Source: Macrostomum lignano (lineage: Eukaryota). Taken from it: 64,000 nucleotides of DNA. The position numbers were made by a program, and so were the translations under genes. The stretch lies in assembly GCA_002269645.1 (NCBI GenBank), contig NIVC01003571.1, forward strand, positions 26,636 through 90,635, given 5' to 3'. The notes under the pieces were generated by a model. The model was not told the origin of the DNA. It did no database searches and saw only the letters and a program-made list of their open reading frames with translations. This document shows positions 11,340 to 58,404 of this stretch, in pieces (position 1 is the first letter of the stretch; every line of letters begins with the position of its first letter).

Positions 11340-12600
11340 CTTTCCCAGGCAAACCCTCCCAGACAGCCCCCCTACCCTCCTCTACTCTTCTATCCTCTCC
11401 TTACTCTTCTCTACCCTTTATCCTCCTACTCTCCTCTACTATCCTACACACCTCTATCCTTCTCTACCCTCTACCCCTTCTCTACCCTCTTCTACCAGCT
11501 CCTCCCCTCCTCTGCAGCTATACCCTTGTCTATTGCCTTAACCTCCGTTACCAGCCTCACCCCCTACTCTCCTCTACCAGCTCCTACCCTTCTCTGCCCT
11601 TCTACCATTTCCTACCCTCCTACCTTCTACTCTCCCCTGCCCTGCTCTACCCTTCGACACTTTCCCTTCTCTCTTCTACCAGCTCCTACCCTCCTCTACC
11701 AACTCTTACCCTCCTAGCCTCCGCCATCAGCTCCTACCCTCCTATAACAGGAGGAATAACAGGATAATGAACCTAGATTAGATTCTATCTACTATACTAG
11801 GTTAGTAGCCTATCCTACCTACTAGGCTAGTAAATATAATACCTATCATTCTACCGTCTAGACTTATAGGTGCTAATCTACTTTATAGTCTGTTAGGCTT
11901 CGCGGGTCAACCTGCTAGTCTTCTAGGTACAAATCCACTCTATCTACCTGACTAGTAGTTGCTAAACAACTCTGTACCCTACAAGGCTAGTAGTCCTAAT
12001 ATACCTATCTACGAGCTCGTACTAGGCAAGTTGTGCTAAACTGCCCTACCTTATATGCTAATAGTTGCTCAAATATTCCTTTTAGAAGCTTCTGAGTAGT
12101 TGAAGTCAGTTTGCTTAAGGTCTTTCACTCTCCCTTTTTCTCTTTGCTATTCTCCCCTAGCCTTGATATTCTTCTCCTTACCCATCCTTGCTATTCTCTT
12201 ACCTTCCTTCTATTCCTGTTTTTTTCTTTTATATTCCCTGCTGAACTTCCCCTCCTCCTCTATCCTTTTCATTCCCTTCCTCCTCTATCCTTGTTGCTAT
12301 TTCCCTTCTCCATTCTCCTTGTCCCCCATTCTCCTTGCTATTCCTCTTTGCTTTGCTCCTTTTTCTCCCCTTCAGACCCAGCCCTTTCCTCCCCTTCAGA
12401 CCTGACCCTCTCCTCCATTCAGTACCCACCCTCTCCTCCCCTTCAGATTCCACCCTCTCCTCCCCTTCAGATTCCACCCTCTCCTCCCCTACAGATCCCA
12501 CCCTCTCTTCCCCTTCAAACCCTCTTCTCCCCTTTAGACCCCAGCCTCTTCTCCCCTTCAGACCCCCCCCTTTTCTTCTTTCCAGCCTCACCTCGTAGCT
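11340..12600. repeat. Polypyrimidine/low-complexity tracts (mirrored at about 26230-27500)
   Basis: C/T-only stretches at 11375-11750 and 12125-12590, including a short 23-bp repeat ccaccctctcctccccttcagat. Confidence 0.75.
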
Positions 12601-12699
12601 CTGCTAATTAAACTTTAACTATTCTTTTCAGAAGAAGTGGAGAAGAATTTATCTCCTTCCTCTCTTCAGAATATCCTCGCATCGGTCTTGTGGTCATTC

Positions 12700-13560
12700 T
12701 ACGTGCCGTAGCGACTGGTCGCAGCAACCATAACTCTCTACCGCCGCCGTAATGGCACCTGACGTACTGTCCAACCTGTTCAACACGACCTCAGGGTGCT
12801 GCAGAGCGACACACTTGCGGCCTACCTTTTCGTTTTGGTGCTCGATGGGGTGCTACGGAGGGCCCTGCCAACAGATGAGGACGGCTTCCTACTGTGGCTG
12901 CAAACAAACAGCCGCCATCTGGAGTCGGCGTAACCCAGGAGCTGTTTGCCTCTACGGCTGAGGGAGCCCAGCGCATGCTAGACAGCCTGGTGGCAGCTGC
13001 GGCATCGGTCGGGCTAGCGGTGAACATCGAGAAGAGGCAGGTGATGTGTACCTGCGGAGCTGCCTATCAAAATCACCTGCTGGGATGCCCGACGATCGTG
13101 CATTGGCTCTACCTCGCTGCACGCGCTTCACGTACCTCGGCAGTCTTGTGCCCAGTGTCCAGGAGGACTTGGCGCGACGCAGGGGCCTGGCCTGGGTTGC
13201 CTTCCGCTCTATCCGAGTTGTCCTGTAGGACGCCGCGCTGCCAGACTGCTGCGACGACCTAGCGAGACCCTCCGCAGGCAAAGACTTCAACTGGCGGGCC
13301 ACACCATTCGGCGGAGGCTTACTGTTCTCAACCAGTGCAGGACGTCCTGCTACTCACGATGCAGGGCCCCTGGCCCCGAGGCTACGGCCGGGCGAGCCGC
13401 TACGCGGATTGCTTGCTAGATGACGCTGGGGTGATCGGCTAGGAATTCTGTTGCCGCCTTCAGAGAGCTCACACCGAGAAAACTGATCTGACACCACCTC
13501 CATTGTGAACTGTACTCTGTTGAGTCCCCGGCGGTTTGCCTTGTTGTTGTCTCTTCAGAA
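12700..13560 (+). pseudogene. Degenerate non-LTR retrotransposon RT fragment (further copies at 17006-17810 + and 25280-26140 -)
   Basis: Frameshifted RT motifs: FNTTSGVLQ.DTLA.YLF, AQRMLDSLVAAAASVGLAVNIEK, FTYLGSLVPSVQEDLARRRGLAWVAF. Confidence 0.75.
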
Positions 13561-14586
13561 TAATTTGCCCAGCTGCGAACTGTGATGGTGCATATCGCGT
13601 ACTCGCGATTCAAAAGTTTATGCTTCTTACTGTTTCACTGATCTAATTCCAAACCTACCACGCAAACTATTTACTTTTAATTCCGTGTGCTTTTCTTGTG
13701 TTTTACTTTTTACCGTTTGGTGTCAATGCTATTTATTGCGTGTAATATTGTCGCAAAATTCAACTTCGGATGTCAATATTTAGCTACTGCCGCTGTTCTG
13801 CATTACAAATACTTCCGCATGTACTGACGTAACATTGCGCCAATAATTTTACATTGCGTGGCGTCGAAACCAATCTGCTGTTGAATGCTACTAGCGTAGC
13901 TAATGGCCGTTTGAATCTCTTGAAATACACTAAAATGTCATGCTGTAGTATTGCTGTTGAAGATCTAAACGAGACTAGCCATACTCCCTACTGATCCATA
14001 TGCTTCTCAAGCAAGGTATACGGAAAGCAGAATGAGCAGCAAACTTAGTATTTGATCTTTGGATCCCTTATAGAACCAAGGGAAGGGATCTAGTCTAGAT
14101 GTAACATTTAAATAAAAATTCTTGATATAATGGAATTCAATTAATTCCTAACCGTAGTAATTTTTTAACTTCCACTTTCCCCGAGTTTGACCACTTTCTC
14201 TGCTACAGGCTTAAGCTAAACCAACGCAAAATACGAGCCTGAATAAAAAACAACTCACTCCACAACCTTAAGCTTAATATTTCTTTCTGCCACTGCTGTG
14301 TCTTGCAATACTCATAAATCCTGTGACTTCGCTTCACAGATGTTGCTTGAGAAACATATGCCGTCCCATTTGAATTGGCGCAAGTCTCTTTTACATCGTC
14401 AAAAGCAATATGTCTGGTGCCAATTATATTTGTGCCGATCAAACTTCCTAGAGAATGATTTGTTGATAACTACATGTCCCTGTCTTGAAGCTTGCACGCT
14501 GTCTTTAACCATTATTTTGTCGGTGTACAACGTGGAACCGATCAGACAAGTTGGTCGTAAATTCCCTAAAATCCTGGATAGGGGCT

Positions 14587-15766
14587 GAGCTGTTGGGGAA
14601 GAGCTAGGCGGCAAGCAGCGGAGCTGTTGGGGGAGCCGCGGTAGGCAGCGGAGCTGTTGGGGGAGAGGCGGTAGGCAGCGGAGCTGTTGGGGGAGCCGCG
14701 GTAGGCAGCGGAGCTGTTGGGGGAGCCGCGGTAGGCAGCGGAGCTGTTGGGGGAGAGGCGGTAGGCAGCGGAGCTGTTGGGGGAGAGGCGGTAGGCAGCG
14801 GAGCTGTTGGGGGAGAGGCGGTAGACAGCGGAAATGTTGGGGGAGCCGCGGTAGGCAGCGGAGCTGCTGGGGGAGAGGCGGCAAGCAGCGGAGCTGTTGG
14901 GGGAGCCGCGGTAGGCAGCGAAGCTGTTGGGGGAGAGGCGATAGACAGCGGAAATGTTGGGGGAGCCGCGGTAGGCAGCGGAGCTGCTGGGGGAGAGGCG
15001 GCAAGCAGCGGAGCTGTTGGGGGAGCCGCGGTAGGCAGCGGAGCTGTTGGGGGAGCCGCGGTAGGCAGCGGAGCTGTTGGGGGAGAGGCGGTAGGCAGCG
15101 GAGCTGTTGGGGGAGCCGCGGTAGGCAGCGGAGCTGTTGGGGGAGAGGCGGTAGGCAGCGGAGCTGTTGGGGGAGAGGCGGTAGACAGCGGAAATGTTGG
15201 GGGAGCCGCGGTAGGCAGCGGAGCTGTTGGGGGAGCCGCGGTAGGCAGCGGAGCTGCTGGGGGAGAGGCGGCAAGCAGCGGAGCTGTTAGGGGAGCCGCG
15301 GTAGGCAGCGGAGCTGTTGGGGGAGCCGCGGTAGGCAGCGGAGCTGTTGGGGGAGAGGCGGTAGACAGCGGAAATGTTGGAGGAGCCGCGGTAGGCAGCG
15401 GAGCTGCTGGGGGAGAGGCGGCAAGCAGCGGAGCTGTTGGGGAGCCGCGGTAGGCAGCGGAGCTGTTGGGGGAGCCGCGGTAGGCAGCGGAGCTGTTGGG
15501 GAGAGGCGGTAGGCAGCGGAGCTGTTGGGGAGCCGCGGTAGGCAGCGGAGCTGCTGGGGGAGAGGCGGTAGACAGCGGAAATGTTGGGGAGCCGCGGTAG
15601 GCAGCGGAGCTGCTGGGGGAGAGGCGGCAAGCAGCGGAGCTGTTGGGGAGCCGCGGTAGGCAGCGGAGCTGTTGGGGGAGAGGCGGTAAGCAGCGGAGCT
15701 GTTGGGGGAGCCGCGGTAAGCAGCGGAGCTGTTGGGGGAGCCGCGGTAGGCAGCGGAGCTGTTGGG
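14587..15766. repeat. 30-bp GC-rich minisatellite, left arm (about 39 units)
   Basis: Unit gtaggcagcggagctgttgggggag(agg/ccg)cg with a few discrete variants. Confidence 0.95.
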
Positions 15767-24200: not shown

Positions 24201-24250
24201 AGCTCCGCTGCTTGCTCCGCTGCTTGCCGCCTAGCTCTTCCCCAACAGCT
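21240..24250. repeat. 30-bp minisatellite, right arm, inverted (about 100 units)
   Basis: Reverse complement of the left-arm unit. It is the source of the 882- and 890-aa repeat ORFs. Confidence 0.95.
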
Positions 24251-27200
24251 CAGCCCCTATCCAGGATTTTAGGGAATTTACGACCAACTTGTCTGATCGG
24301 TTCCACGTTGTACACCGACAAAATAATGGTTAAAGACAGCGTGCAAGCTTCAAGACAGGGACATGTAGTTATCAACAAATCATTCTCTAGGAAGTTTGAT
24401 CGGCACAAATATAATTGGCACCAGACATATTGCTTTTGACGATGTAAAAGAGACTTGCGCCAATTCAAATGGGACGGCATATGTTTCTCAAGCAACATCT
24501 GTGAAGCGAAGTCACAGGATTTATGAGTATTGCAAGACACAGCAGTGGCAGAAAGAAATATTAAGCTTAAGGTTGTGGAGTGAGTTGTTTTTTATTCAGG
24601 CTCGTATTTTGCGTTGGTTTAGCTTAAGCCTGTAGCAGAGAAAGTGGTCAAACTCGGGGAAAGTGGAAGTTAAAAAATTACTACGGTTAGGAATTAATTG
24701 AATTCCATTATATCAAGAATTTTTATTTAAATGTTACATCTAGACTAGATCCCTTCCCTTGGTTCTATAAGGGATCCAAAGATCAAATACTAAGTTTGCT
24801 GCTCATTCTGCTTTCCGTATACCTTGCTTGAGAAGCATATGGATCAGTAGGGAGTATGGCTAGTCTCGTCTAGATCTTCAACAGCAATACTACAGCATGA
24901 CATTTTAGTGTATTTCAAGAGATTCAAACGGCCATTAGCTACGCTAGTAGCATTCAACAGCAGATTGGTTTCGACGCCACGCAATGTAAAATTATTGGCG
25001 CAATGTTACGTCAGTACATGCGGAAGTATTTGTAATGCAGAACAGCGGCAGTAGCTAAATATTGACATCCGAAGTTGAATTTTGCGACAATATTACACGC
25101 AATAAATAGCATTGACACCAAACGGTAAAAAGTAAAACACAAGAAAAGCACACGGAATTAAAAGTAAATAGTTTGCGTGGTAGGTTTGGAATTAGATCAG
25201 TGAAACAGTAAGAAGCATAAACTTTTGAATCGCGAGTACGCGATATGCACCATCACAGTTCGCAGCTGGGCAAATTATTCTGAAGAGACAACAACAAGGC
25301 AAACCGCCGGGGACTCAACAGAGTACAGTTCACAATGGAGGTGGTGTCAGATCAGTTTTCTCGGTGTGAGCTCTCTGAAGGCGGCAACAGAATTCCTAGC
25401 CGATCACCCCAGCGTCATCTAGCAAGCAATCCGCGTAGCGGCTCGCCCGGCCGTAGCCTCGGGGCCAGGGGCCCTGCATCGTGAGTAGCAGGACGTCCTG
25501 CACTGGTTGAGAACAGTAAGCCTCCGCCGAATGGTGTGGCCCGCCAGTTGAAGTCTTTGCCTGCGGAGGGTCTCGCTAGGTCGTCGCAGCAGTCTGGCAG
25601 CGCGGCGTCCTACAGGACAACTCGGATAGAGCGGAAGGCAACCCAGGCCAGGCCCCTGCGTCGCGCCAAGTCCTCCTGGACACTGGGCACAAGACTGCCG
25701 AGGTACGTGAAGCGCGTGCAGCGAGGTAGAGCCAATGCACGATCGTCGGGCATCCCAGCAGGTGATTTTGATAGGCAGCTCCGCAGGTACACATCACCTG
25801 CCTCTTCTCGATGTTCACCGCTAGCCCGACCGATGCCGCAGCTGCCACCAGGCTGTCTAGCATGCGCTGGGCTCCCTCAGCCGTAGAGGCAAACAGCTCC
25901 TGGGTTACGCCGACTCCAGATGGCGGCTGTTTGTTTGCAGCCACAGTAGGAAGCCGTCCTCATCTGTTGGCAGGGCCCTCCGTAGCACCCCATCGAGCAC
26001 CAAAACGAAAAGGTAGGCCGCAAGTGTGTCGCTCTGCAGCACCCTGAGGTCGTGTTGAACAGGTTGGACAGTACGTCAGGTGCCATTACGGCGGCGGTAG
26101 AGAGTTATGGTTGCTGCGACCAGTCGCTACGGCACGTAGAATGACCACAAGACCGATGCGAGGATATTCTGAAGAGAGGAAGGAGATAAATTCTTCTCCA
26201 CTTCTTCTGAAAAGAATAGTTAAAGTTTAATTAGCAGAGCTACGAGGTGAGGCTGGAAAGAAGAAAAGGGGGGGGGGTCTGAAGGGGAGAAGAGGCTGGG
26301 GTCTAAAGGGGAGAAGAGGGTTTGAAGGGGAAGAGAGGGTGGGATCTGTAGGGGAGGAGAGGGTGGAATCTGAAGGGGAGGAGAGGGTGGAATCTGAAGG
26401 GGAGGAGAGGGTGGGTACTGAATGGAGGAGAGGGTCAGGTCTGAAGGGGAGGAAAGGGCTGGGTCTGAAGGGGAGAAAAAGGAGCAAAGCAAAGAGGAAT
26501 AGCAAGGAGAATGGGGGACAAGGAGAATGGAGAAGGGAAATAGCAACAAGGATAGAGGAGGAAGGGAATGAAAAGGATAGAGGAGGAGGGGAAGTTCAGC
26601 AGGGAATATAAAAGAAAAAAACAGGAATAGAAGGAAGGTAAGAGAATAGCAAGGATGGGTAAGGAGAAGAATATCAAGGCTAGGGGAGAATAGCAAAGAG
26701 AAAAAGGGAGAGTGAAAGACCTTAAGCAAACTGACTTCAACTACTCAGAAGCTTCTAAAAGGAATATTTGAGCAACTATTAGCATATAAGGTAGGGCAGT
26801 TTAGCACAACTTGCCTAGTACGAGCTCGTAGATAGGTATATTAGGACTACTAGCCTTGTAGGGTACAGAGTTGTTTAGCAACTACTAGTCAGGTAGATAG
26901 AGTGGATTTGTACCTAGAAGACTAGCAGGTTGACCCGCGAAGCCTAACAGACTATAAAGTAGATTAGCACCTATAAGTCTAGACGGTAGAATGATAGGTA
27001 TTATATTTACTAGCCTAGTAGGTAGGATAGGCTACTAACCTAGTATAGTAGATAGAATCTAATCTAGGTTCATTATCCTGTTATTCCTCCTGTTATAGGA
27101 GGGTAGGAGCTGATGGCGGAGGCTAGGAGGGTAAGAGTTGGTAGAGGAGGGTAGGAGCTGGTAGAAGAGAGAAGGGAAAGTGTCGAAGGGTAGAGCAGGG

Positions 27201-38712: not shown

Positions 38713-39558
38713 GTGTGTGTGTGTGTGTGTGTATATATGCCACCGGTGCAGTCTAACGTTCCGCGAATCTGGTCAGGAACCAATTCCAGTAAGCAAGCGC
38801 GCTTGGCTCCTTGGCCCACAAGTCGGCGGCGTCGCCAATACCGAGCTGCTGCCTGCGCGTCCAGGTGGCCGGGCAGTCGCAGAGGTGGTCGACCGTTTCT
38901 GGCTCCAGTTTGCAGGCCCGACACAGCCCGTCGTCGGCGCGTCCGATGCGCAGGTTGTAAGCTTGAAGTTGGATCGAGTGGCCGGAGCGGAAGCGGCGCA
39001 GGCTTAGCGCTTCGGTACGATTTCCGAAGCTCGCTCGCTGCACCCTGGCTTCCCTGCCGTAGGTCCTGCGGCTCCGGTCGTGCGTGAACCTTCTCGGTAG
39101 TTGCCTCCGGAGGACTCTACTCGTGATGCTGGCGCCAACCGGCATGTTGTCCTGTGGCATGGTTGCGGCTTCACCAGCTGGCTTATCAGCTGCTTCGTTT
39201 CCGGGGAGGCCGCAGTGAGCCGGTATCCAGATCATAGCCACCTTGCGGCCGCACTCCCCGAGGTGTGCCAGCAGGTGCCGGATGTTAATGGCGGCCGGCA
39301 ACCGGGATTCGCCTGTGATGGCTTGCAGCGCGCTGCGGCTGTCAGTGGCTATGCGGGCGTGGTGCCATGGTTCGTCCAGTTTGCACAGCCAGTCAATAGC
39401 CGCCAGCAGGGCGACTAGCTCGGCAGCGGTCGAGGAGCAGGGCCGCCCCGCTGGAATGCGCAGCGTGGTGATATTGTCAGAGAGCGCAGCAGTGAGCGGC
39501 GGCGTGACCTTGTCTATGATGATGCCAGCCCCTCCGCTGCCGTCTTTGAGAACCGCTC
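38713..39558 (-). mobile_element. 5'-truncated LINE B (RNase H plus C-terminal zinc-binding region)
   Basis: RNase H motifs DGS, CSSTAAEL, TDSRSAL, WIPAHCGLPGNEAAD, followed by CRAC..ETVDHLCDCP. (CA)n tail. The 12-bp TSD tgctgttgctgt sits at 38701-38712 and 39559-39570. Confidence 0.9.
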
Positions 39559-39632
39559 TGCTGTTGCTGTTGTTGCTCCTCTTGCTGTTGTTGTTGTTGT
39601 TGTTGTTGTTGTTGAGTGCGGAGTGCAGCCGT

Positions 39633-42600
39633 CTAGAGCGGGGTCCAGTCGATCCACTCCAGGAGCCGCGCCACCAGGTTCCCATCGGCTAGGTCTTTCA
39701 GATCGCAAATGCTGTTCTGTCTTCGGGCGACATCGATCGCAGGGCAGTGGACCAGGTGGAATTGGTCTACCTCGAGCCCCCAAAGCCTGCACTCGGCCAG
39801 CTGAGCTTTGCCGATGCGCTTAGCGTAGTAGGCCGAGGAGGGGCAGTGTCCAGCTCTCACCTGCGCAACGAGGACTTGCTCACGCCGGCTGCCGTTATGG
39901 TGCGTGATGCGTCCTTGGTAAGTCTCCTTCAGATGGCCGGTCAGGTCCGGAAGGTACTCGAGACGGCGGTAGATAAACCGCTTGGCTGCTTCGAGCGAGA
40001 TGGCCACTTGGGCTTGATCCAGAAGAGCTGCGGCTTTGGCCTCGCGATCGACGAACTCGTTACCAGCCACGCCAGCATGGCCGGGAATCCACTGGATCGT
40101 GAGAACGTAACGGCCAGCTGCTTGCCGAAGAAGGGCCTTCAGGTCTTTGAGTAGCGCGTTAGTGGTGGGCCGGTCGGCTATCAGTGCTCTGACGGCCGCC
40201 TGGCTATCGGTGAGGAGGGTGGCGGTGTCAACGTCCTGCTGGATGACATCCACGACGGCATCTCGGAGCGCGCGGAGCTCGGTTTCGAAGGAGCTGCACT
40301 ATCTGCCCGCTGCAGAGTGGCCGCCCCGGATGATCGTGCCCATCTCCTGGTCAAACAGAATCCAGGCGGCGCCGCCGTTGGCGGTGCCACCCGAAGCGGA
40401 GCCGTCCGTGAAGTAGCAGGTACTGGGCAGGCGTTATCGGAAGGTGTCGGCGATGATCGGATCGTGGGTGTGCTGACTGTCGGTTTTACGGAGCGGTCTC
40501 ACCAGTTGCGGATAGAGCCTCAGCCGGTCCGAGCCGCTGAGTGTGTCCCACGGCGGGGCTCTGACCCAGGCTCCCGGGAGAAGGCTATGTGGGAGGATCT
40601 CGTTGAGCACTGAGTGGGCTTGTTCGTGGAGGCCACGGTTGGCTTTGAGCCGGGTGGGGGTCCTGAGTTCATACCTGGACCTCCAGGGGTCCGCCTCAGG
40701 CCGCCGGAGCGCCTTTTCGACGGTGACCAGCGCTCGTCGTTTGGCCTCCAGGCTGATGGGCACACAATCGGCCTCACGGTAGATGGCCACGCTAGAAGTC
40801 GAGCTTGGTAGACCAGAGACAAGACTCAGAGCGACTTTTTGGGCTTTGTCCAGGTCATTGAGGCGAGTCTGAGAGAGCCAGGGTATCCAGGCTGCAGCCG
40901 CATGCCAAACCACAGACTCCACCACGGCTTTATACACCGTCCTAAGCGTGGCGCGGTCCCACCCCCATTCGCGATGCGACAGTGCACGCAGGACAGCACA
41001 ACGACGGCGCAGTTTGGTGGCAACTTCGTCGGACTGCCGCTTGAAGAGCAGGCCGCTGTCGATCCAGACACCCAGGTAGCGCAGCTCCTGCCTGGTTGGG
41101 AGTTGCTGGCCTCGGATGCACAGGTTGAGGGTATGGTCGCGGTCCCTGCGGTCTCTCGAGAAGATACAGCATTCAGTTTTGAGGGGATTGAGATCGATAC
41201 GGAGATCTGTGGCCCAGGCGTCGATGCGATCGATGGCCAGTTGAAGGCGCTCCGCAATCTGCTGGATGTTGCTGCCCGAGGCCCAGACGCCCAGGTCGTC
41301 AGCAAAGCCGGCGTAGTTGACATCTGGGACCAGGGAGTCTGCCCAGTCGTTAATGTACAGGAGGAAGAGCACCGGCGAGCACACTGCCCCCTGCGGCACC
41401 CCCTCCTTAAGCGGCTTCCATTTGCCGATCGTGTCGCCCACGCGGACGGCAATCTGGCGCCCCTCCAGGAAGCTGGCAGACCAGTGCACCATGCGACCCG
41501 GGACTCCCTCATCCATGATACGGGCAAGGAGGCGGGTACGCCAGACCCGGTCGAAGGCGCGGGAGCAGTCAAGGGTGACAGCGATCGTTTTGCGAGGCGG
41601 GCGTTGTTCCCAGTGGTCTTGGATTTCCTAGACCAGACGCGCCACTTGTTCTTCGCAGCTATGCCCTCTCTGAAAACCAGCTTGCCACGGTTGCAGCGTG
41701 TTGTTGAGTTCGATCCAGTGCATGAGCCGGTCCATCACAATGCACTCCATGATTTGAACACAGATGGAAGTGAGACTAACAGGCCGGAAGCTGCTGCAGT
41801 TGGCTGGGTCTTTGCCCTCTTTCAAAAGTGGGACGATCACCGCCTTCTTCCAGACTTCCGGGCAGTGCCCTAGGGACCAGCACCGATTAAAGACCGTGAG
41901 CCAGGCTGTGAGCCACGAGTCCGGCAGGTGTCTGAAGAAGGCCTGCAATGTCTGAAGAATGCAAGCTTTGGCCGCCTTACTCATACGAAAGCAGAGGCGT
42001 TGGATTTGCTGCTTGACAGTGCCTTTGTTGAGCCCATTGCTATCGTCTTCGAGCTGGGCCTGGTAGCTGTTCCAGTCAGCTTTCTGCCAGGCCCAGGTGA
42101 GACAAATCTTCTGGTCGGTGCTAGCGCGGTCGCTATCCACAGTGATGAGAATGGGTTTGTGGTCAGAGCCCAGTTCGTCAAGGGCCTATCACGAGCAGAG
42201 GTCGTCGAGGCCGGCGCTAGCGAGGCTGATATTGGGGGCACTCTCTCCACCGTCGCGGCGATCGAGACCGTCGCGGCGATCGAGACAGGTGAGGGAGCCC
42301 GAGTTGAGGACACAATACCCACTACTGTCACACCACTCCAACAGGGCTTTGGCTTGTTCGGCGCCCTCGGGCCCCTGGCCAGGCAGACTACCCGAGGTCG
42401 TGTGATGGAGATTAAAGTCGCCAGCAATAATCTCGCGCTGGTGCGGCTTCAGCCAGAGATCGATGTCCGGGTGCTCCCGGCAGTCGGCGCCAGCATTGCG
42501 CCTGATGGGCGGCCGGTAAATGTTAGTGAGCACGAGACGCTTTTTGACACTAAGATTGATCACGATGCGGCAGCCTTCCACCGTGCCTCCACTCCAGCCT

Positions 42601-43470
42601 TTGAGCCGCCGGAAGGGGATTTCTTGGCGGATGAGCGTGAGGAGACCTCCTCCCTTGTACGTCTCGCTGGAACGTAGCGTTCGTCGGTCTTTTCTCACGG
42701 TGGTAAAGCCGGGGATCTTTGGCGTGCGGGAGACGGAGTCAAGCTTAGATTCTTGGATCATGACAACATCAACTTTGAGGCGTTGGACCAGCTCCTCCAG
42801 TTCTCCCATTTTGTTTCGGATGCCGTCCGCATTCCATTGCAGGACCTTGAGGCCCTTGTTATTGGCAGGTCCTTCTTTCCGTCCGCGGTGCGTTTCGTTG
42901 TGGGCCATGGGGTCGGCTTCTGGCAAGGAATGCGTAGCTCCACTGGTAGTGAGGGCTTCGGTACAGAACCGACACCGCCAGCGGCCCCTGCGGACTTCTT
43001 GCTTAATCTGTTCTCTGGTGGCTTCGGTGCATGCATTGTGGAAAAAGGCCTCACAGGTGTTACAGCAGGCAATCACCGTCGACACCAGGATGGTCTTCTT
43101 GCACTTGGCGCAGTTAGGCTTTTCTTCTTTGATCCTCGCAAGCAGGGTGAGTCTCCGATCCTCGGCCGGTGACTCCGCCTGGACGGGAGTGCCTTGCTGA
43201 GCAGTGGCCTCGGTGTCTTGTCCCGGCGGCTCCGGGGATGAGACTGGCCCACGTGAGCAGTCGGAACAAGTCCAGGTGTTCTCGCGCACGGCGCGGTCCG
43301 AGGCCCAACGGCTCAACCCAGAGCAGATTCTTTGGAGATGAAAACCGCGGTTGCATAGCCGACAGACCAGCGCCCTGTCACGGAGCGGCTTGCCGCAGCA
43401 GGCCTTGCCATAGTGTGACCGGGGGTCCTGGGTTGGTTTCAATGTTGCCGGCCCTGAATAAGCGCAGCTT
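39633..43470 (-). pseudogene. LINE A polyprotein, with five in-frame stops and one frameshift
   Basis: ORFs 42189-43613, 41628-42140, 40434-41516 and 39633-40253 share one frame. APE motifs QWNADG, IQESK, GDFN, SDH. RT motifs RPVSLTS, GVPQG, FADD, YLG. RNase H motifs FTDGS, TDSQAA, WIPGHAGVAGNE. Stops near 42189, 42186, 41628, 40434 and 40299. Confidence 0.9.
43423..43470 (-). other. 2A-like ribosome-skipping peptide KLRLFRAGNIETNPG-P
   Basis: Matches D(V/I)ExNPGP except for N in place of D. It lies at the N-terminus of an APE-type LINE ORF. Confidence 0.75.
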
Positions 43471-43583
43471 GGGAAGGTGGTGGGCCCAACTGCCACCCTC
43501 GACCGCCGGGAAGCCATCGGCGGGCTGCAGCTTCCGTTGACACAAACTTCTTCTAGCCGATGGGACACAGGGTGTCCAAGGTT

Positions 43584-43690
43584 TAGGCGCTCTTTGATAT
43601 CCCATAGGGACACCTCCCCCCCGCGACGAAGACGCGGCGCCTAGTAGGGGCTGGAGAAGCTTCTCCAGGTCGGCTGTAAAGGCCGGCGGG
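43584..43690 (-). ncRNA. Predicted HDV-like self-cleaving ribozyme at the LINE A 5' end
   Basis: Folded by eye: P2 uaggcgc/gcgccua, P3 gcg/cgc, L3 ucuucgu, P1.1 cu/ag, P4 guguccc-uau-gggauau, J4/2 caaa. P1 is imperfect (cccgcc against a G run). Confidence 0.55.
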
Positions 43691-43941
43691 TCCTCTTGCT
43701 GTTGCTGCTGTTGCTGCATTGGCCAGGTTGCCGGTGGGAGCATGGGGTGTGGGTAACGGGTTGGGATAGGGCATCCCAGTAGATGGGGGTGGGGGATAAA
43801 ATAGACTGGCAAATGGATAAGGATAGGGATAGGGATAGGGATATGGATAGGGATTGGGATAACTTAGGTAGGGATTACTTAGGTAGGGATTCATAGCGTA
43901 GTAGGAATTCGAAATTTACTGGAAAAAAAAACTGGCCTGGG

Positions 43942-45168: not shown

Positions 45169-48100
45169 ATGTCGCAGCAGCCGGATGCCCTGGCTGCTGT
45201 CACCGCAGTAGCTAATGATGATAATGAGGACGATGCGGATGTGCAATATCTGGTTTCATTCTACGCCAATTTAGATCGCGCCGGCGGGCGCAAGCTGATG
45301 CGCGTGCTGTCGCAGCAGGCGGAGGCGGCCGTGTCCGCGGCTGATTCGCAGGCTGACGACTGCGATGCCAGCCAAGGAGAGGAGGATGCTGCCGACTGTA
45401 TCGATGCCGATGAGGAAGACAATCAACCAGGTGATGCCCCACCTGCTACCGACATTTCCGATGACGACGACATCTGGTACTTGTTCGAAGATGACGGCCG
45501 GCCGAGAAAGCTGAGCCGTCGACAGAAAAAGCATCGCCGAATGGCGGCTGGCAGCGAATTGTCGGATGGCGTCGACGCTTCTGTCCGGTCTGGTCACGTG
45601 ACGTACAGCGATGTCGACTCGGCGCCGCCGAAGCCAAGCCTGACTGTAAAGTTTCTGCACGTCAGGCAGACCAGGGCCGGCCTGTGGTCGCCGCTGTCTC
45701 TGATGGACCTCTGCCTGCAGCGGCTTAGCAATCGGCCTGGTCAGAAGCGGCCAGTTCAGCTGCCGCGGCCGCTGCTTCGCCGACTTCAACGAGAGCGTCT
45801 GCTCCGTCGGCTGCGCGAGCTGACTCGCCAGTGGTGGCGCGAACGGGCCCAGGATCTCAATCAAGTGATGCAAATGCGCAACGTTGACGTAGCGCAGGCG
45901 TTGCGCAGTCACTGTGGTCGTAATGCAGAAGAGATTTTCCTGTCCCGCTCTCTGTACAGCGCCTCGCATTACAATTGTCAGCATGAAACAGTGGTTCACT
46001 CGCAGGGCGCCTATGCAGCCGAGGCATACCGTATGCCGGCCCTGCTGCGGGCTTGGAGCTCGCGCGGCGACACCTGCCGCTACCTGCCTATTTTTCATCA
46101 GCCGCGGTTTTATTGCACCAGTAACTACGTGTTGAAGCTTGCATTTTCTTGCTTTCCAATAGCCTCGCTGGCCTGTCTGGCTGCTCTGGAGTTCGACTGG
46201 CGCCGCAGGTGCATCCGATCAGAAGGTGTTTGTCACGAGCTGGCGAATCACTACGGAAAGCATGCCTTGCCCTATTGTTTATGGGCTAGAGGCCTTGTTG
46301 ACGAGGCCTGCTCAGCGTTCCTAGCCACTTCAGACTTGTTAGGGCCTGGTATTGATCGAGCATCTATGCTGAATGAGGTTGCTAGAATGTATGCTATGGT
46401 GAGTTACTCATGTGAGGTGCAATAGGGCTGATTGGTAGCTGCTGTAAGACAGTATCTAGTGAACCACAGGTTAGTAGCCCCCGGAAGACACGTTAATAGC
46501 CTCTTTAAGACATTTTAGTAGCTAATGGAAGACAGGTTAGTAGCTAATGGAAGACAGGTTAGTAGCTAATGGAAGACAGGTTAGTAGCTAATGGAAGACA
46601 GGTTAGTAGCGACTAGAAGACAGGCTAGTAGCCACTGGACCTAGAGGACATCTCAATAGCGACTGGGTGACAGGTTAGTAGCCAAAGGACATGATGTCAC
46701 TAGGCCAAAGAACCCTCTACAGCAGTTAATCTGCAATTTTAACCAGTCAAAATATGCCTGAAATCGCCAGGTGGACATGCCGCAGGATGCCGCATCTTTC
46801 TATTTGATGGCCCTTCGCGAACTCATGGCTGCTGGCGCGCTGTCCGACTCCCTGAGCTTTGAGCCGGCTGACGATCGCCTAATCCGCATTGGCGCTCACT
46901 TCCAACAATTGGCATTGTGCGCCACCGTATTCGACGAAGGCCAATTCAAAACCGGTTGTGGGGCCGTTGCTAGGCAACGCTGGCTGCAAGTATTTACACA
47001 GAGATTCGCCTGGAAACCGGAGCCTGGACCGAGTGAGCCAGCTTGGGCACCGTTTATTGACACGGAGGCCATTCAGGCGGCTATTCAGCTCGGCAACCTG
47101 TCCGACGGCCAGGTGGATGTGGATAGCTACGCCGCTTCGATTGAGCAGTCGGGCGCCGGGGTCAGCCAGCAACAGCAGCAACAGCAACGCGAGGAGCGGC
47201 CGCCTCAGCAACCGACTGCGCGGATAGAGTGCGGCCTGCGTGCCCTTATTTCGCTTGTATTCGTTCACTGCGGTGATGGCGTGAGTGTTTTTTAAATAGA
47301 GCATTATAGCATTAAAATGTTCACATAAATAGTGCCTTTTAGAGATTCGGAAATATCCGGGATTACAACGGCTTTAGAGATTGTGAATGTCCAGGGGGTC
47401 ACACAATGGCTTTAGATAGGAAACTAGCCAGGGTGGGTCACACAATGGCTTTAGATAGGAAACTAGCCAGGGTGGGTCACGCAATAGCTTTAGATAGGAA
47501 ACTAGCCAGGGTGGGTCACACAATGGCTTTAGATAGGAAACTAGCCAGGGTGGGTCACACAATGGCTTTAGATAGGAAACTAGCCAGGGTGGGTCACGCA
47601 ATAGCTTTAGATAGGAAACTAGCCAGGGTGGGTCACACAATGGCTTTAGATAGGAAACTAGCCAGGGTGGGTCACGCAATAGCTTTAGATAGGAAACTAG
47701 CCAGGGTGGGTTACGCAATAGCTTTAGATAGGAAACTAGCCAGGGTGGGTCACACAATGGCTTTAGATAGGAAACTAGCCAGGGTGGGTCACGCAATAGC
47801 TTTAGATAGGAAACTAGCCAGGGTGGGTCACACAATGGCTTTAGATAGGAAACTAGCCAGGGTGGGTCACGCAATAGCTTTAGATAGGAAACTAGCCAGG
47901 GTGGGTCACGCAATAGCTTTAGATAGAAAACTAGCCAGGGTGGGTCACACAATGGCTTTTTAGAATCGAGAAGCAATACAGAGAAAAAAACAAAACTTAT
48001 TACCCACAACTGCCAGGCTGACTGGTGCCGGGAGACCCTGGTCCACCTGGACAGGCTGCACGAGTTCACCAACCTCACCAGCATCTACCAGTCGATGCTG

Positions 48101-51100: not shown

Positions 51101-52622
51101 AGTGGACACGAAGATGGCAGCGACGAGGACACGAAGACAGACGTCGCTAAAGTGGACGCAGCGGCGGCTTCAGAAGATGAAATTCCTACTAGCAATAATC
51201 TAGCTTATTCTCGCATCATTCTGGGCATCCAGTGGCTGACTGACTGCGGTCGCCTTCTGGCTGTGTTCTTGCCGGATCGGCTGGCTCTGCTGAATCCCGA
51301 CACATTCGATGCCGTGCCCATAGCTGACGACTGTCGAAATTTTGTTGAACTGTGCGGCAACCAGGCTGTTGGAGATGATCTCTATGGATTTCGAGTGCCT
51401 TCGGTGCGTGGGCGTCGGCTGTCTTAGTTTTGTTTAGCTTGAGTAGTCTGGAGCTGAGTGACCTCGAGCTAGAGTAGTCTTTATTTGTAGCAATTACCTT
51501 AAGATAGAATCAGATTAACAATGAATATAACATTTAGATTATTGCAAAGTGTGATTATTAGCTTGTCGCCTATGGAGATTGGCTTGTCACCTATGAATAT
51601 TAGCTTCTCGCCTATAGAAATTAGCTCGTCGCCTATAGAAACATTTAGATTATTGCAAAGTGTGATTATTAGCTTGTCGCCTATGGAGATTGGCTTGTCA
51701 CCTATGAATATTAGCTTCTCGCCTATAGAAATTAGCTCGTCGCCTATAGAAATTAGCTCGTCGCCTATAGAGATTAGCTTGTCGCCTATAGAGATTAGCT
51801 TCTCGCCTATGGAGATTAGCTTGTCGCTTATAGAGATTAGCATATCGCCTATAGAGATTAGCTTCTCGCCTATGGAGATTAGCTTCTCGCCTATGGAGAT
51901 TAGCTTGTCGCCTATAGAGATTAGCTTGTCGCCTATAGAGATTAGCTTGTCGCCTATAGAGATTAACTAGAGGTCTATAGAGCTGTTTTTTCCAGTGCGA
52001 TGTGCTCATTAATAAGTAATTAGTAATCGCACAGCTTATATAAGAAATTCCCCACCCTTGCCATGGCCAGGTGCCAAACGTACACGCACTGAACTGGCAG
52101 GCTGGCCAGACCCTGCAGGCCCAGAGTGAGATTCGCTGCTACCGCACCCTGGAGGAGCAGCCATTAGCCAATGGCAGCGGATTCCGCACCGTCCTGTCAG
52201 TTCAAGGCAACGTATACGTGTTAGATACGCCTGCTAACGATGAGGCAGGTCATCGAGTTCGAGTTGTCTGCGCTGCCGCTGTCCCCGGCCAGGCGCGCGA
52301 AGCCAGATGCGTGCCGAATGTCGGCTTGCTAGTGTGCGCCGCTCCCCTAGCCCAGGTGTTCGGCAATGCCGACGCCGAATCGGACGCCGCATCGGATGAG
52401 CAGCCGCTCCGCCAGGAGGTGCTGTACCTGTTTAATTGGTCCGGCCAGCTGCTCAGCTTCCTGCCTGGCCTTGGCGCCGGTCCGCACAGTTTCTATTGCG
52501 AGCCGGACTCGCTTCCTGGTCGGGTGTACTTTAGAGACGGCTACGGAGCCGTTTGCTGCGCTGAGCTGGCCGAGTCAGAGCAGCGCCGGCTGGCCGACCG
52601 GGCCGGTGCTTTGGCTTCCTAG
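45169..52622 (+). CDS. Uncharacterised 6-exon protein, about 1432 aa (acidic N-terminus, BC-box/SOCS-like motif, helical TPR-like region)
   Basis: Exons 45169-46398, 46771-47280, 48017-48610, 49101-49503, 50394-51403 and 52071-52622. All introns are GT-AG and all phases are compatible. The total of 4299 nt equals 1433 codons including the stop. Confidence 0.8.
46515..46630. repeat. 22-bp minisatellite, intron 1
   Basis: Unit tagtagctaatggaagacaggt, about 5 copies. Confidence 0.85.
47404..47959. repeat. 39-bp minisatellite, intron 2 (about 14 copies)
   Basis: Unit caat(g/a)gctttagataggaaactagccagggtgggtcac(a/g). Confidence 0.95.
48640..49000. repeat. Degenerate minisatellite of about 33 bp, intron 3
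   Basis: caggacaggctagagattctggttgctatg-like units. Confidence 0.7.
49650..50060. repeat. 16-bp minisatellite, intron 4
   Basis: Unit ctgtc(t/c)agctgtgtgc. Confidence 0.9.
51530..51965. repeat. 21-bp minisatellite, intron 5
   Basis: Unit gcctat(a/g)gagattagctt(g/c)tc, with an internal duplication of about 111 bp. Confidence 0.9.
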
Positions 52623-54696: not shown

Positions 54697-57600
54697 GCTG
54701 CCAAGGCACAGCAACTGGGCAAAAACGGCAGCCAAAACGGCGGCGGCGGCGGCGGCGGCGCCGACAGCGGCCTGTGCAGCGAGCCGAGCAGTAGCAGCGG
54801 CGAGTTCGCGGCCGAGCTTGCGGCCGTCCGCAGCTGGCGCAACGGTGCCGGCTACCAGTCTGACGATGATGAGCTGGACTCGCGCACCCCGGACGAAGCC
54901 GAGAGCGCGGCGGACTGGCTCGAACAGACCGGCTCACCGCTGCTGGCCGACATCGCTCGCCGACTATTGCAATCGTCGCCAATGTCAACGTCGACCGAGT
55001 CAGCGTCGACGGCATCGTCAAACGCCATCGGCGATCATCAAGCTGGGGCCGATTTAAGCGCCGCAGATTCGGCACTAGACGCGCACTATCAAAGAATGAG
55101 CAGGAAGCAGCTCAATGCCGTGATGAAGCGGATCGCTACTTTGAAAGCTAAACGAGGCCTGGCCTCTAGGCAGGATGTTAGACAGCTGTTCAGCGAGGCT
55201 GGGGTCGCCGGGACAGCAGCGGCAACTTCGGGCGTTGCCGACGCGGACACCGGATCGGAGGACACCGGCGACTCGGAGGACGATCTGCTGCAAGTGACGG
55301 GACGAACTGCAGCGCCTGTTGCCGGGGCAACGCCACTACACGCAGATCAGGTAATTATCATACAGACCGTGTCGCTGTCTGTCACACCTGGCCGCCTTGC
55401 CAGAGGATCAGGGGCTTATTTTATTGTCATCTTTTATTAATTTCAATTTGACAAGTTACAATTGATCGGCCTTCAAAAATTGTTTTAATTCCACACGGAC
55501 CACACGCTACTACTCGTATCACTGTTTTTCTCTGTCCTCTCCTTCACAGGCTCCATCTGTAAGCAGCAGCGGTGCTACACCTGTTGCCACGTCGGGCCTT
55601 GAGCAATACCCGACCTTCGTACTGCCCAACAACCGCCTGGGCAATGCCAGCATATTCGATTTCAGCGAGCCAGATAGGCAGCAGATTCGAGCTCTGGCCC
55701 ACCTGGAGCTGGCCGCCCTGTTCGATAAATACGACTGCGATCCGGCGTTTAGGAAGCCGTCGTCACGCGGCCGGTCGGCCTCGCGGCGCTCTGTTGTTGC
55801 CAGCTGTTTCGGCGTGCCGCTTGACCAGCTGGTTGCTAAGGAGAGCGGCAGCTCCAGTAGCGACGGGGTGCCTCAGCTGGTCCGCTGGATTGTCGGTCAG
55901 CTTGAACGGCCGGAAGCGCTGCGCACCGAAGGCCTGTTCCGCGTCCCCGGCTCGCTGCAGAGAATCCGCCAGGCCAGGGAGCGGGCCGAGTCAGCCGGCA
56001 TCAAGGCGCTGATGGCCGACACCGAGCAGCAGCATCAGCGTCTGACCGCTGACTGGCACGACCTAGCCGGCCTGTTGAAGGTCTTCCTGCGTGAGCTGCC
56101 CGAGCCGCTGACGTTCAACAGCCTATGCGGATTTCTATTTAAAACTGCGCTGTATTCAGCACGATATGGACAGATTGTTAGGCCTTAATCTGCTTGTGCT
56201 GCTGTTGCCAACGCCTAATTGTAGCACGCTGCGCCTGATGGTCGACTTGTTTGCTAAGGTGCGCGTCTGTCTCATGAAAATGATTTGCGCATTTCTTGAT
56301 TGTTTTTTTTTCAACCCTAAGTCTTAGTGTAGAGTTTTTTTTCCACATATCGTGATTTGAAATTGGGTCTCTATATTCAACCACCCCAAGTTTTCTTTGC
56401 CTGTTTTCTCTCCCTTACCCCCTGCCCCAGCTATTCTGTCCCTTACCCCCTGCCCCAGCTATTCTCTCCCTTACCCCCTGCCCCAGCTATTCTCTCCCTT
56501 ACCCCCTGCCCCAGCTTTTCTCTCCCTTACCCCCTGCCCCAGCTATTCTCTCCCTTACCCCCTGCCCCAGCTATTCTCTTCCTTACCCCCTGCCCCAGCT
56601 ATTCTCTCCCTTACCCCCTGCCCCAGCTATTCTCTCCCTTACCCCCTGCCCCAGCTATTCTCTCCCTACTCCCTGCCCCAGCTATTCTCTATCTTACCCG
56701 CTCCTTCCCTAGCCCATCGGCGCGAAGTCCTGTGTAAGTTGAGCTTCAGTTTAATCAGTATGATATTCGATCTCCCACACACAATTCACCCTCTGTCAGG
56801 TAATCGAGCAGCACAAGCACAATCGAATGAATCTGAAAGCCATAGCAACCGTCATGGCGCCAAATTTATTCGCCATTCAATCTTCGAAGAAAGCGCAACG
56901 AGAAGGCGCCAATCTGTTGGCTGAGACTGGCAATCTAATCGGATTAGTTGAGATGCTCATTAAATATCGCACCATAGTGTGGAGCGTGCCAGAGTTTCTA
57001 ATTAAACAGTTGCGCGAGCCGCCTAATAAATTAAGCCAGCTTGCCAGCACCAGCGGCAGCGGCGGCGCCAGCAGCGCCAAGAAGGCGGCCAAACTGTTGC
57101 GCAAGCAGGCAGCCGCTGCTGCAGCAAAAACGCCCGTATCCTCTTTGGCAGCTGCAGTTGTTGACAGTCCGGTGTTTAACAGCTCAACTTCTGCGACATC
57201 GATCCAAAACCAGCAGGTGAGTTGTCGCATGTTGTCCCATCCGATACTTCAGCTGTCCCTTCCGATACTTCAGCTGTCCCTTCCGATACTTCAGCTGTCC
57301 CATCCGATACTTCAGTTGTCCCATCCGATACTTCAGCTGTCCCTTCCGATACTTCAGCTGTCCCTTCCGATACTTCAGCTGTCCCATCCGATACTTCAGT
57401 TGTCCCATCCGATACTTCAGCTGTCCCTTCCGATACTTCAGCTGTCCCATCCGATACTTCAGCTGTCCCATCCGATACTTCAGCTGTCCCTTCCGATACT
57501 TCAGCTGTCCCATCCGATACTTCAGCTGTCCCATCCGATACTTCAGCTGTCCCTTCCGATACTTCAGCTGTCCCATCCGATACTTCAGCTGTCCCATCCG

Positions 57601-58404
57601 ATACTTCAGCTGTCCCATCCGATACTTCAGCTGTCCCATCCGATACTTCAGCTGTCCCATCCGATACTCCAGCTGTCCCTTCCGATACTTCAGCTGTCCC
57701 ATCCGATACTTCAGCTGTCCCATCCGATACTTCAGCTGTCCCTTCCGATACTTCAGCTGTCCCATCCGATACTCCAGCTGTCCCTTCCGATACTTCAGCT
57801 GTCCCATCCAATACTCCAGCTGTCCCTTCCGATACTTCAGCTGTCCCATCCGATACTTCAGCTGTCCATCCGATACTTCAGCTGTCTCATCCGATACTTC
57901 AGCTGCCCCATCCAATACATCAGCTGTCTTATCTGATCCTAATTCAGTAATCTAATCCCCTGTTTTTAGTGACCCCTTTTAGATCTATAAATAGATCTAA
58001 ACTTATCTGTTCATCAGATCCTTCAACAGCCCGTCAGATTTTAGTAGCCTCTCAGATCCTTCAGTAGCCTCCCAAATTCACTAACAGCCTTTAGTAAAAG
58101 TAGGCCGCTTGCCCACTCCTGCACACTTCGGCGCTAATCAAGCAACTTCCCATACCTGACCACTTCACCCCCTCTCACCAAGGTAAGCATCAGTGTTCAC
58201 CAGGCCAGCACCAACCGCAGCCAGCTGGTTCCAATCTCGCCGTCCACCACCGCTGCCGAAGTTCTTCACGGGCTGGGCTGCGACCCCTCCACCACCTCCC
58301 TGTACGAGGTTGGCGGCAACATCAATGAGCGCCGGCTGCCCGGTAACACACAGATTTATTACCTGCTCAAGATTAATCCCACCTGCTCTTGGGCTGTTAA
58401 GTGA
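54697..58404 (+). CDS. RhoGAP of the ARHGAP18/28/40 (Conundrum) family; first exon not identified; one apparent +1 frameshift
   Basis: Exons 54697-55350, 55550-56258, 56800-57216 and 58183-58404. Motifs TPDE..DWL..TG, FGVPL, EGLFRVPG, LLKVFLRELPEP, MNLKAIATVMAPNLF and LYEVGGNINER. Confidence 0.8.
56400..56695. repeat. 28-bp minisatellite in a RhoGAP intron (about 10 copies)
   Basis: Unit ccctgccccagctattctctcccttacc. Confidence 0.9.
57232..57920. repeat. 21-bp minisatellite in a RhoGAP intron (about 32 copies)
   Basis: Unit ctgtccc(a/t)tccgatacttcag. Confidence 0.95.

Follow-up and report, generated by a model that had tools for sequence, protein, structure and literature searches.

HDV-like ribozymes are established at the 5' termini of R2, R4, Dong, Baggins, RTE and L1Tc (PMC3774820), and an earlier sequence-only reading of the locus described here noted that they cap R2, L1Tc/ingi and some RTE elements. 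These double-pseudoknot ribozymes free the LINE RNA from a co-transcript and define its 5' end, and a role in translation initiation has been proposed for them (PMC3774820; Ruminski et al. 2011 as cited in PMC4908430). In R2 the 5' strand of P1 can migrate upstream, giving a J1/2 of up to 36 nt (PMC3774820), and helices within J1/2 activate large HDV-like ribozymes of the drz-Agam-2 type (PMC4908430). L1TcRz begins with the first nucleotide of its host LINE, which encodes APE, RT and RNase H as well as a 2A peptide at the N-terminus; its +1 nucleotide is C, its P1 has three C-G pairs at the base, and its P1.1 amounts to one or two bp (PMC3185411, PMC4035085). Ribozymes go unmentioned in a survey of 2A-bearing metazoan LINEs, and in that literature the pairing of a ribozyme with a 2A peptide outside trypanosomatids appears to be unreported (PMC3708506).

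The present locus is a case of this known LINE 5'-ribozyme strategy in a LINE lineage not previously linked with ribozymes. All coordinates are positions in the 64,000-nt stretch of DNA that was analysed (the window); the ribozyme is read on the minus strand, and its nucleotide 1 is window position 43690. The element, LINE A, and its flanking repeats are as follows.

39590 to 43690, minus strand: LINE A, delimited by its ORFs, Pfam domains and TSD
43703 to 43691, minus strand: 5' TSD copy AACAGCAAGAGGA, an exact 13-nt repeat inside a CAG/CAA tract
39589 to 39577, minus strand: 3' TSD copy AACAGCAAGAGGA, directly after the LINE A (CAA)n tail

LINE A comprises, in order, the ribozyme, a 2A peptide, a PHD finger, an AP endonuclease, a reverse transcriptase, RNase H and the (CAA)n tail, and its ORFs and Pfam domains reveal several frameshifts. 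It is a decayed copy of a single-ORF non-LTR retrotransposon that inserts into CAA/CAG microsatellites. Because the exact 13-nt TSD is present on both sides, the first base of LINE A is 43690, and the whole fold lies within the first 107 nt from this TSD-defined end. A different, 5'-truncated LINE with a (CA)n tail lies directly downstream, both LINEs occupying one CAG/CAA tract.

No second copy of LINE A was found in the window by blastn and tblastn, the sole match being the unrelated 5'-truncated LINE downstream. Protein searches returned no relative above 50% identity; the nearest protein (48% identity) is from the flatworm Macrostomum lignano, and trypanosomatid proteins are not among the matches. 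Neither PDB nor NCBIfam searches assigned LINE A to a clade, and protein-guided locus searches of genome contigs and viral contigs gave no match. Since same-family copies are absent from the window and the collections searched, there is neither within-family covariation nor a census of 5' ends to draw upon.

On the minus strand, 43643 to 43584 contains P2, P3, L3, P3', a run of seven G, AG, P4, J4/2 and P2' in canonical order. The parts of this core, with a hairpin that follows it, are these.

43643 to 43637, minus strand: 5' strand of P2, UAGGCGC, in 7 perfect bp with 43590 to 43584
43636, minus strand: unpaired C between P2 and P3, non-canonical
43635 to 43633 and 43625 to 43623, minus strand: P3 GCG and P3' CGC, 3 bp
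43632 to 43626, minus strand: L3 UCUUCGU, 7 nt, with U at position 1 and G at position 6
43622 to 43616, minus strand: 3' strand of P1, GGGGGGG, the run of seven G
43615 to 43614, minus strand: P1.1 AG, pairing with C-U at L3 positions 2-3 (C60-G77, U61-A76)
43613 to 43597, minus strand: P4 hairpin GUGUCC/GGAUAU with loop CUAUG, 6 bp, three of them G-U
43596 to 43591, minus strand: J4/2 CAAAGA, with C43596 as the predicted catalytic cytosine
43590 to 43584, minus strand: 3' strand of P2, GCGCCUA, placed by covariance model and alignment
43563 to 43577, minus strand: hairpin GGACAC-CCU-GUGUCC, just 3' of the ribozyme, with L001 counterpart CGGACCAUGGUCCG (L001 is a relative described below)

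The P2, P3, 7-nt L3, G run, P1.1 AG and C-A-A-A J4/2 that had been picked out by eye are all present where they had been placed. The P4 hairpin is there as well, but its proposed length of 7 bp is wrong: in the active fold P4 would have 6 bp, because a seventh pair (G77-C95) would occupy the G of P1.1 and the C of J4/2. Relative to the canonical C-N-R-A, the J4/2 is CAAA plus two extra nucleotides, GA. The strand order is P1-(J1/2)-P2-P3-L3-P3'-P1'-P1.1-P4-J4/2-P2', and the descriptor match that embodies it is unique in the window. Topology, P3/L3, J4/2, P1.1 and covariation (below) together point to membership of the HDV-like class.

The closest analogue of the LINE A ribozyme is L1TcRz (Pr77-hallmark) of the L1Tc/ingi clade. 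Both head an APE-type LINE that encodes RT and RNase H and has one long ORF with a 2A peptide close to its N-terminus. The LINE A ribozyme would, like L1TcRz, combine a +1 C with C-G pairs at the P1 base, rather than the G-U wobble of HDV; in both a P1.1 of one bp can suffice, and in both cleavage would be expected at the element's first base. The LINE A domain order (2A, APE, RT, RNase H) is compatible with that of L1Tc/ingi. The two differ in host and lineage, in the PHD fingers that LINE A carries between 2A peptide and endonuclease, and in its (CAA)n tail, microsatellite targets and core motif C-GCG-UCUUCGN-CGC ... CAAAGA.

Relaxed descriptors match at about 0.3 per kb, are non-specific and were excluded from the evidence; that frequency, and the promiscuous pairing of the G run, speak for the view that the fold is mere coincidence, made up of short stretches that happen to be complementary in a GC-rich LINE. 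A strict descriptor speaks against it. This demanded a P2 of at least 6 bp, a spacer of 0-1 nt, a 3-bp P3, L3 of the form U....G., a 7-nt P1', pairing of P1.1 with L3, a P4 of at least 4 bp, C-N-R-A plus 0-2 nt, and P2'. In the 128 kb searched (both strands of the window) one site was found, the ribozyme at the LINE A 5' end, against an expectation of 0.06-0.07 strict cores per 64 kb, and 0.007 at the observed strength, under a first-order Markov model of either the whole window or GC-rich LINE sequence. The HDV-like descriptor scan that had been proposed as a check, run in this strict form, hence matches the claimed site and no other in the window.

Further evidence comes from five related LINE 5' ends in metagenome assemblies, which encode N-terminal 2A peptides and have the same fold architecture. 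The first of them, L001, is a metagenomic LINE whose protein is 38% identical to that of LINE A.

L001, 214 to 286: P1 CCAAUUC/GAAUUGG; J1/2 UAC; P2 CCCCACC/GGUGGGG; core C-GCG-UCUUCGG-CGC; P4 of 6 bp; J4/2 CAAAGA
L128, 210 to 294: P1 CCGGCUU/AAGCCGG; J1/2 UAC; P2 UCCUACC/GGUGGGG; core GCG-UCUUCGC-UGC; a longer P4; J4/2 CAAAGA
L126, 65 to 135: P1 C-run/G-run; J1/2 UU; P2 GGACCGA/UCGGUCC; core GGC-UUACCGU-GCC; P4 of 8 bp with GCGA loop; J4/2 CGAA (canonical)
L131, 2119 to 2210: P1 GCAACGCC/GGCAUUGC; J1/2 G; P2 ACGAAGG/CCUUCGU; core CCC-UCGACGC-GGG; an irregular P4; J4/2 CAAAGAA
L002, 632 to 691: P1 CUGGCCU/GGGUCAG; J1/2 AA; P2 GAGCACC/GGUGCUC; core UCG-GUUUGAC-CGG; no P4; J4/2 CAAAGA

L004 is a decayed version of L002. 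The first P1 pair is C-G in all five relatives, and P1.1 is 75% paired across the six sequences, with just 1 bp in L001, L128 and L126. The 14-nt core of the window copy (C, P3, L3 and P3'; 43636 to 43623) recurs in L001 with the last L3 base alone changed, and L128 differs from it at that base and at the first base of P3' (UGC). In the relatives, too, the fold adjoins CAA/CAG flanks. A clear canonical fold was not found in L003, L129 and L130, which are more distant 2A-encoding LINEs; L129 has a P1/P3/P4-like arrangement from its first base, without a canonical P2. As sources of 5' ribozymes, L003, L005, L127, L130 and L132 were rejected, being truncated, too divergent or without upstream sequence. 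Minimal HDV-like ribozymes without P4 are known (compare the theta ribozymes, PMC10879173); L002 and L004 resemble these in keeping P1, P2, a 3-bp P3 and CAAAGA while a 7-nt linker replaces P4, and the comparison is limited by the 6-bp P4 of the window copy and the atypical L3 of L002 and L004 themselves.

The distant ribozymes were not alignable by MAFFT, and so a single-sequence model was used, followed by an anchored alignment of hand-picked segments. The first covariance model was built from L001 alone, with P2, P3 and P4 as pairs. It has a single match in the window, at 43646 to 43581 on the minus strand (29.5 bits, E about 5e-6), which covers the full model and contains zero non-canonical P2 pairs; it also finds L128 (E = 6e-12). 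On 100 hard-negative bacterial loci sharing the same 20 core bases it scores at most 24.4 bits. These negatives came from a scan of metagenome contigs with CGCGTCTTCGNCGCG-N15-45-CAAAGA that yielded at least 120 loci, which were rejected as candidates, those listed being bacterial chance matches whose P2 does not exceed 3 bp. A second model, built from three true matches (window, L001 and L128), recovers L002 and L004 at the places where they had been parsed by eye (E = 4e-5 and 4e-4). It recovers neither L126 nor L131, both of which rest on the descriptor and manual parsing.

Pairing is maintained through substantial change. When the window, L001 and L128 are aligned by the model, the window is found to differ at both bases of six P2 pairs out of seven, with no loss of pairing; 97.5% of cells are paired, compared with 32-68% in controls with slid partners, and an equally good result is given by 2 of 500 shuffles. 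An anchored alignment of six sequences (P1, P2, P3 and P1.1) has 95% of cells paired, compared with 56% in shuffles, and double changes in 18 of 19 pairs, reached by none of 500 shuffles; its segments were delimited by hand, with artificial anchors, and were chosen for pairing, so that these counts lean towards structure, and the sequences are few. P1 alone departs from chance in the five relatives (Fisher P = 1.6e-4, taking the best 7-mer 0-8 nt upstream of P2 against random 15-mers). L001 and L128 share about 85% identity from the start of the UAC linker and are unrelated upstream of it; three positions have changed in both strands of P1 between the two elements, and each strand is nevertheless perfectly complementary to its own partner. 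Homology that begins at UAC, combined with self-complementary P1 strands, identifies P1 as the 5' boundary of that family.

The compensatory changes in P2, the absence of any other window match to the relative-derived model, and the position of the site within about 100 nt of the TSD-defined LINE 5' end add to the descriptor counts, and we regard chance as effectively refuted. Given the match to a model derived from a relative, the compensatory P1, P2 and P3 and the TSD position, the HDV-like ribozyme module belongs to the LINE A 5' end. That such a homologous module, with catalysis predicted from these features, characterises the 5' end of the LINE at the level of the family is in our judgement probable. 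The sequence-only reading had proposed an HDV-like ribozyme at this end, and the covariance model, the covariation and the TSD uphold the module; its further proposal that the fold starts at the very first base is not established, as discussed below.

A second alternative grants the structure and its conservation but denies catalysis. The fold would then be a conserved, structured 5' UTR element, such as a translation-initiation structure, a reverse-transcriptase-recognition structure or an internal promoter, and its likeness to HDV topological only. Such a role would suit the AUG, which four of five elements place within the fold or beside it, the non-canonical spacer C and extended J4/2, the L002/L004 variant without P4 and a typical L3, and the missing Rfam match. 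Searched with gathering thresholds and with E up to 10, window positions 43450 to 43800 gave no match to HDV-type families (HDV_ribozyme, CPEB3, drz-Agam and others); searched with E up to 10, positions 150 to 350 of L001 gave none to ribozyme families, with three weak sRNA/snoRNA matches (E 1.6-9.2). The Rfam result is weak evidence against a ribozyme, because the Rfam models are sequence-specific and cannot encode a pseudoknot, and silence there is usual for this pseudoknotted, sequence-poor class. The conserved features, moreover, are exactly those of the catalytic core. Four of six elements have the 7-nt L3 with its U1 and G6 (position 6 is C in L131, and position 1 is G in L002); the A-rich J4/2 of every element opens with C; P1' follows P3' directly in most (L128 has a two-nt GC spacer, and L126 may too); P1 would start at the element boundary; and in L126 the J4/2, CGAA, is fully canonical, P2 is 7 bp long and P4 carries a GNRA loop. 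A non-catalytic element is therefore an unlikely reading, and a ribozyme remains the one that we prefer.

The relation of the fold to the coding sequence is unusual enough to be set out separately, and concerns the following feature.

43449 to 43423, minus strand: 2A-like peptide GNIETNPGP, with N in place of the canonical D

In the relatives the 2A motif is GDVExNPGP. The AUG at 43605 to 43603, in the P4 loop, is the only one within LINE A in frame with the 2A peptide, exactly as the sequence-only reading had it. The first 2A-frame AUG is likewise in the P4 loop in L128, and lies 5 nt past the ribozyme in L126 and about 12 nt past it in L131; in L001 it has been lost. In four of the five elements it thus falls in the P4 loop or no more than about 15 nt beyond the ribozyme, and since it is in or near the fold in relatives also, its placement is a family trait and not an accident of the window copy. 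P1 through P1' lies upstream of the AUG, and the codon phase of CAAAGA differs between the window (phase 0) and both L001 and L128 (phase 2), which points to a constraint on RNA rather than on protein.

Two stretches could supply the 5' strand of P1 in the window copy, and two hairpins lie between them.

43690 to 43685, minus strand: distal candidate CCCGCC, the first bases of the element, with 5/6 pairs to the G run and a G-G mismatch at 43687
43650 to 43644, minus strand: proximal candidate CCCCUAC, adjoining P2 upstream, with 6/7 pairs to the G run
43685 to 43671, minus strand: hairpin 1, CGGC/GCCG with a 7-nt loop, present in the MFE fold and overlapping the last distal-P1 base
43668 to 43651, minus strand: hairpin 2, a perfect 18-nt palindrome CUGGAGAAGCUUCUCCAG, a candidate peripheral (P1.2-like) helix of J1/2 if the distal P1 is used

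The distal pairing with its G-G mismatch and the two extra hairpins in the first 47 nt, CGGC/GCCG and the palindrome, had all been described from sequence and are as described. Of 200 shuffles of nucleotides 1 to 47, 198 fold less well than the actual sequence (z = -3.1). There is a mismatch in each register, and neither register exceeds chance (P 0.12-0.26): the distal duplex has an energy of -9.3 to -11.0 kcal/mol and a chance P of about 0.12-0.24, its 5/6 pairs failing to exceed chance because the G run pairs with any pyrimidine-rich stretch. The proximal strand matches the descriptor and forms the P1 of the MFE fold (-9.8 kcal/mol, chance P about 0.26). Both candidates start with CCC, and the distal one alone starts at nucleotide 1 of the element.

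If the proximal strand is the one used, the functional form would be a compact 67-nt ribozyme (43650 to 43584, P1 CCCCUAC/GGGGGGG) without J1/2, and 43690 to 43651 with both hairpins would be upstream leader, carried along because the parental RNA was left uncut, began further upstream or acquired extra sequence at the 5' junction. Five of its six P1 pairs are contiguous, and CCCCUAC lies at the position homologous to that of P1 and the UAC linker in L001 and L128, giving the same P1-UAC-P2 layout. All five relatives have a J1/2 of 1-3 nt and none a long one, which counts against the distal P1. The TSD boundary, however, lies 40 nt further upstream, and those 40 nt between the distal and proximal sites are not microsatellite-like, unlike the donor flank that transduction would be expected to bring; the first 15 nt of LINE A, CCCGCCGGCCUUUAC, resemble the P1 and linker of L128, CCCGGCUUUAC; and the proximal pairing, as noted, does not exceed chance. 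The upstream-shifted P1 5' strand of R2 is a precedent for the distal P1. With the distal P1 in use, and only then, the two hairpins (43685 to 43651) fall in J1/2, and the arrangement would resemble the drz-Agam-2 type with its peripheral J1/2 helix (P1.2), one of the two hairpins being a perfect 7-bp stem that could pinch P1 and P2 together. It would differ in that the window hairpins are not flush, hairpin 1 overlapping the last P1 base and hairpin 2 lying 7 nt from P2; hairpins of this kind are present in no relative.

Weighing these points, we find the case evenly balanced for the proposition that the window copy cuts at its first base, 43690, with a 40-nt J1/2 holding both hairpins. Cleavage before 43650 by the compact ribozyme is a serious, if lesser, possibility, and the remaining weight falls to the use of neither site. 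The proposal that the fold begins at the first base of LINE A therefore has the TSD-defined end and the CCCGCC pairing behind it, and is not established because the proximal CCCCUAC pairs as well. With its reading frames frameshifted and P1 imperfect in either register, the window copy is plausibly dead, as had been suspected; it is old, and may no longer cleave.

For the family, the ribozyme that we prefer suggests the following course of events. LINE A would be transcribed, probably inside a longer host read-through transcript, and its 5' end would form a nested double pseudoknot, with P1 stacked on P1.1 and P4, and P2 stacked on P3. C43596 of J4/2 would act as the general acid, and the RNA would be cut immediately 5' of the first P1 nucleotide, freeing a LINE RNA that has a 5'-OH end and the ribozyme at its start. 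The cleaved end would set the 5' boundary of new copies. With the folded ribozyme heading the message and the 2A-frame AUG in the P4 loop, translation probably starts in or next to the ribozyme, and a short leader peptide would be shed at the 2A site.

R2, R4/Dong, RTE and Baggins belong to other LINE clades and are without a 2A peptide, and R2 and R4 have a restriction-like endonuclease; LINE A differs from all of these in having its start codon inside the P4 loop. On a broader and more speculative view, which we put forward tentatively and think rather doubtful as a whole, LINE A would represent a widespread, undescribed animal-type LINE lineage (2A-PHD-APE-RT-RNase H, (CAA)n tail, CAA/CAG targets) with a C1-type HDV-like ribozyme and a start codon in the P4 loop or at the 3' edge of the ribozyme. 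Self-cleavage, cap-independent initiation and 2A release would there form one coupled module, shared with L1Tc/ingi and either ancient or horizontally spread, and the P1 5' strand could jump upstream as in R2, giving a large J1/2.

For the annotation of full-length copies a convenient marker is C-GCG-UCUUCGN-CGC ... CAAAGA with a flanking 7-bp P2. LINE A adds to the ribozyme-headed LINEs a lineage that also encodes an N-terminal 2A peptide. If active, the ribozyme would account for the release of RNA from host transcripts by single-ORF, promoter-poor LINEs that have landed in microsatellites and, the AUG being inside the ribozyme, for the cap-independent translation of that RNA; it would also link the ribozyme-plus-2A arrangement of trypanosomes to elements of animal-type genomes.

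A short hairpin lies directly 3' of the predicted HDV-like ribozyme that begins LINE A, a frameshifted non-LTR retrotransposon, and is found again in a related LINE at the metagenomic locus L001:

Window 43563-43577, minus strand: hairpin, GGACAC/GUGUCC
L001, about 292-305: hairpin, CGGAC/GUCCG

The hairpin is retained in both elements though its sequence differs, and in each it is preceded by AAACC. The ribozyme of L1Tc is modulated by downstream sequence.

Other metagenomic relatives differ from the ribozyme fold predicted for LINE A:

L002, 632-691, and L004, 1042-1097: minimal-looking ribozyme variant of one subfamily, without helix P4 and with an atypical P3 loop (L3)
L129 (NCBI assembly GCA_035092305.1), 197-340: ribozyme-like arrangement at the element start, after a long (CAA)n run

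Since some 300 nt of common sequence precede the L002/L004 variant, it is not obviously situated at the 5' end of its element; this upstream stretch could belong to a 5' UTR or be where a tandem copy ends. In L129 the initial GGGAUC is complementary to a GAUCCC placed directly 3' of a hairpin of 3 bp with a 7-nt loop (CCA-UCGUUUC-UGG), and a P4-like stem of 6 bp follows, while a canonical P2 adjoining P3 is absent from 197-340. Either a divergent ribozyme or chance could account for the arrangement.

A very large inverted duplication occupies about 7600-31100 of the window. Its arms, which reach 2 kb, are 100% identical, as in the pair 12563-14624 and 24214-26275, and the structure may be either a true palindrome or an artefact of assembly. 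Satellite arrays of 30-nt period lie within it at 14.5-15.5, 18.4-18.9 and 21.1-23.1 kb, as do G/C-skewed repeats of 6 and 12 nt at 10.3-11.1 and 27.7-28.4 kb. Minisatellite arrays at 47279-48097, 56350-56723, 57086-57994 and 51557-52024, with periods of 39, 28, 21 and 21 nt respectively, show between-unit identities of 96-99%.

The frame encoding the 2A peptide of LINE A remains open upstream of the element's first base as well, across 43691-43812 of the flank (minus strand; MPVYFIPHPHLL...QQQQQQQED). In principle, translation of a host read-through transcript could run on into the LINE A frame, or the open frame may simply be a consequence of low-complexity sequence. Directly adjoining the 3' target site duplication of LINE A is another element:

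Window 38720-39576, minus strand: second LINE, 5'-truncated

It comprises RNase H and a C-terminal region, ends in a (CA)n tail, and has about 32% protein identity to LINE A. The two LINEs are nested in a single CAG/CAA tract (43730-43691 ... 38719-38660), one frame of which is polyglutamine, and their insertions may therefore have disrupted a coding exon.

CAA/CAG microsatellites also directly precede related LINEs at L126 (41-64), L129 (120-196) and L131 (2110-2118), and (CAA)n forms the 3' end of both LINE A (39590-39616) and the L001 element (4683-4697). Together these sequence features suggest that CAA/CAG repeats are a preferred target of LINE A and its relatives, a preference like that of other microsatellite-specific LINEs.
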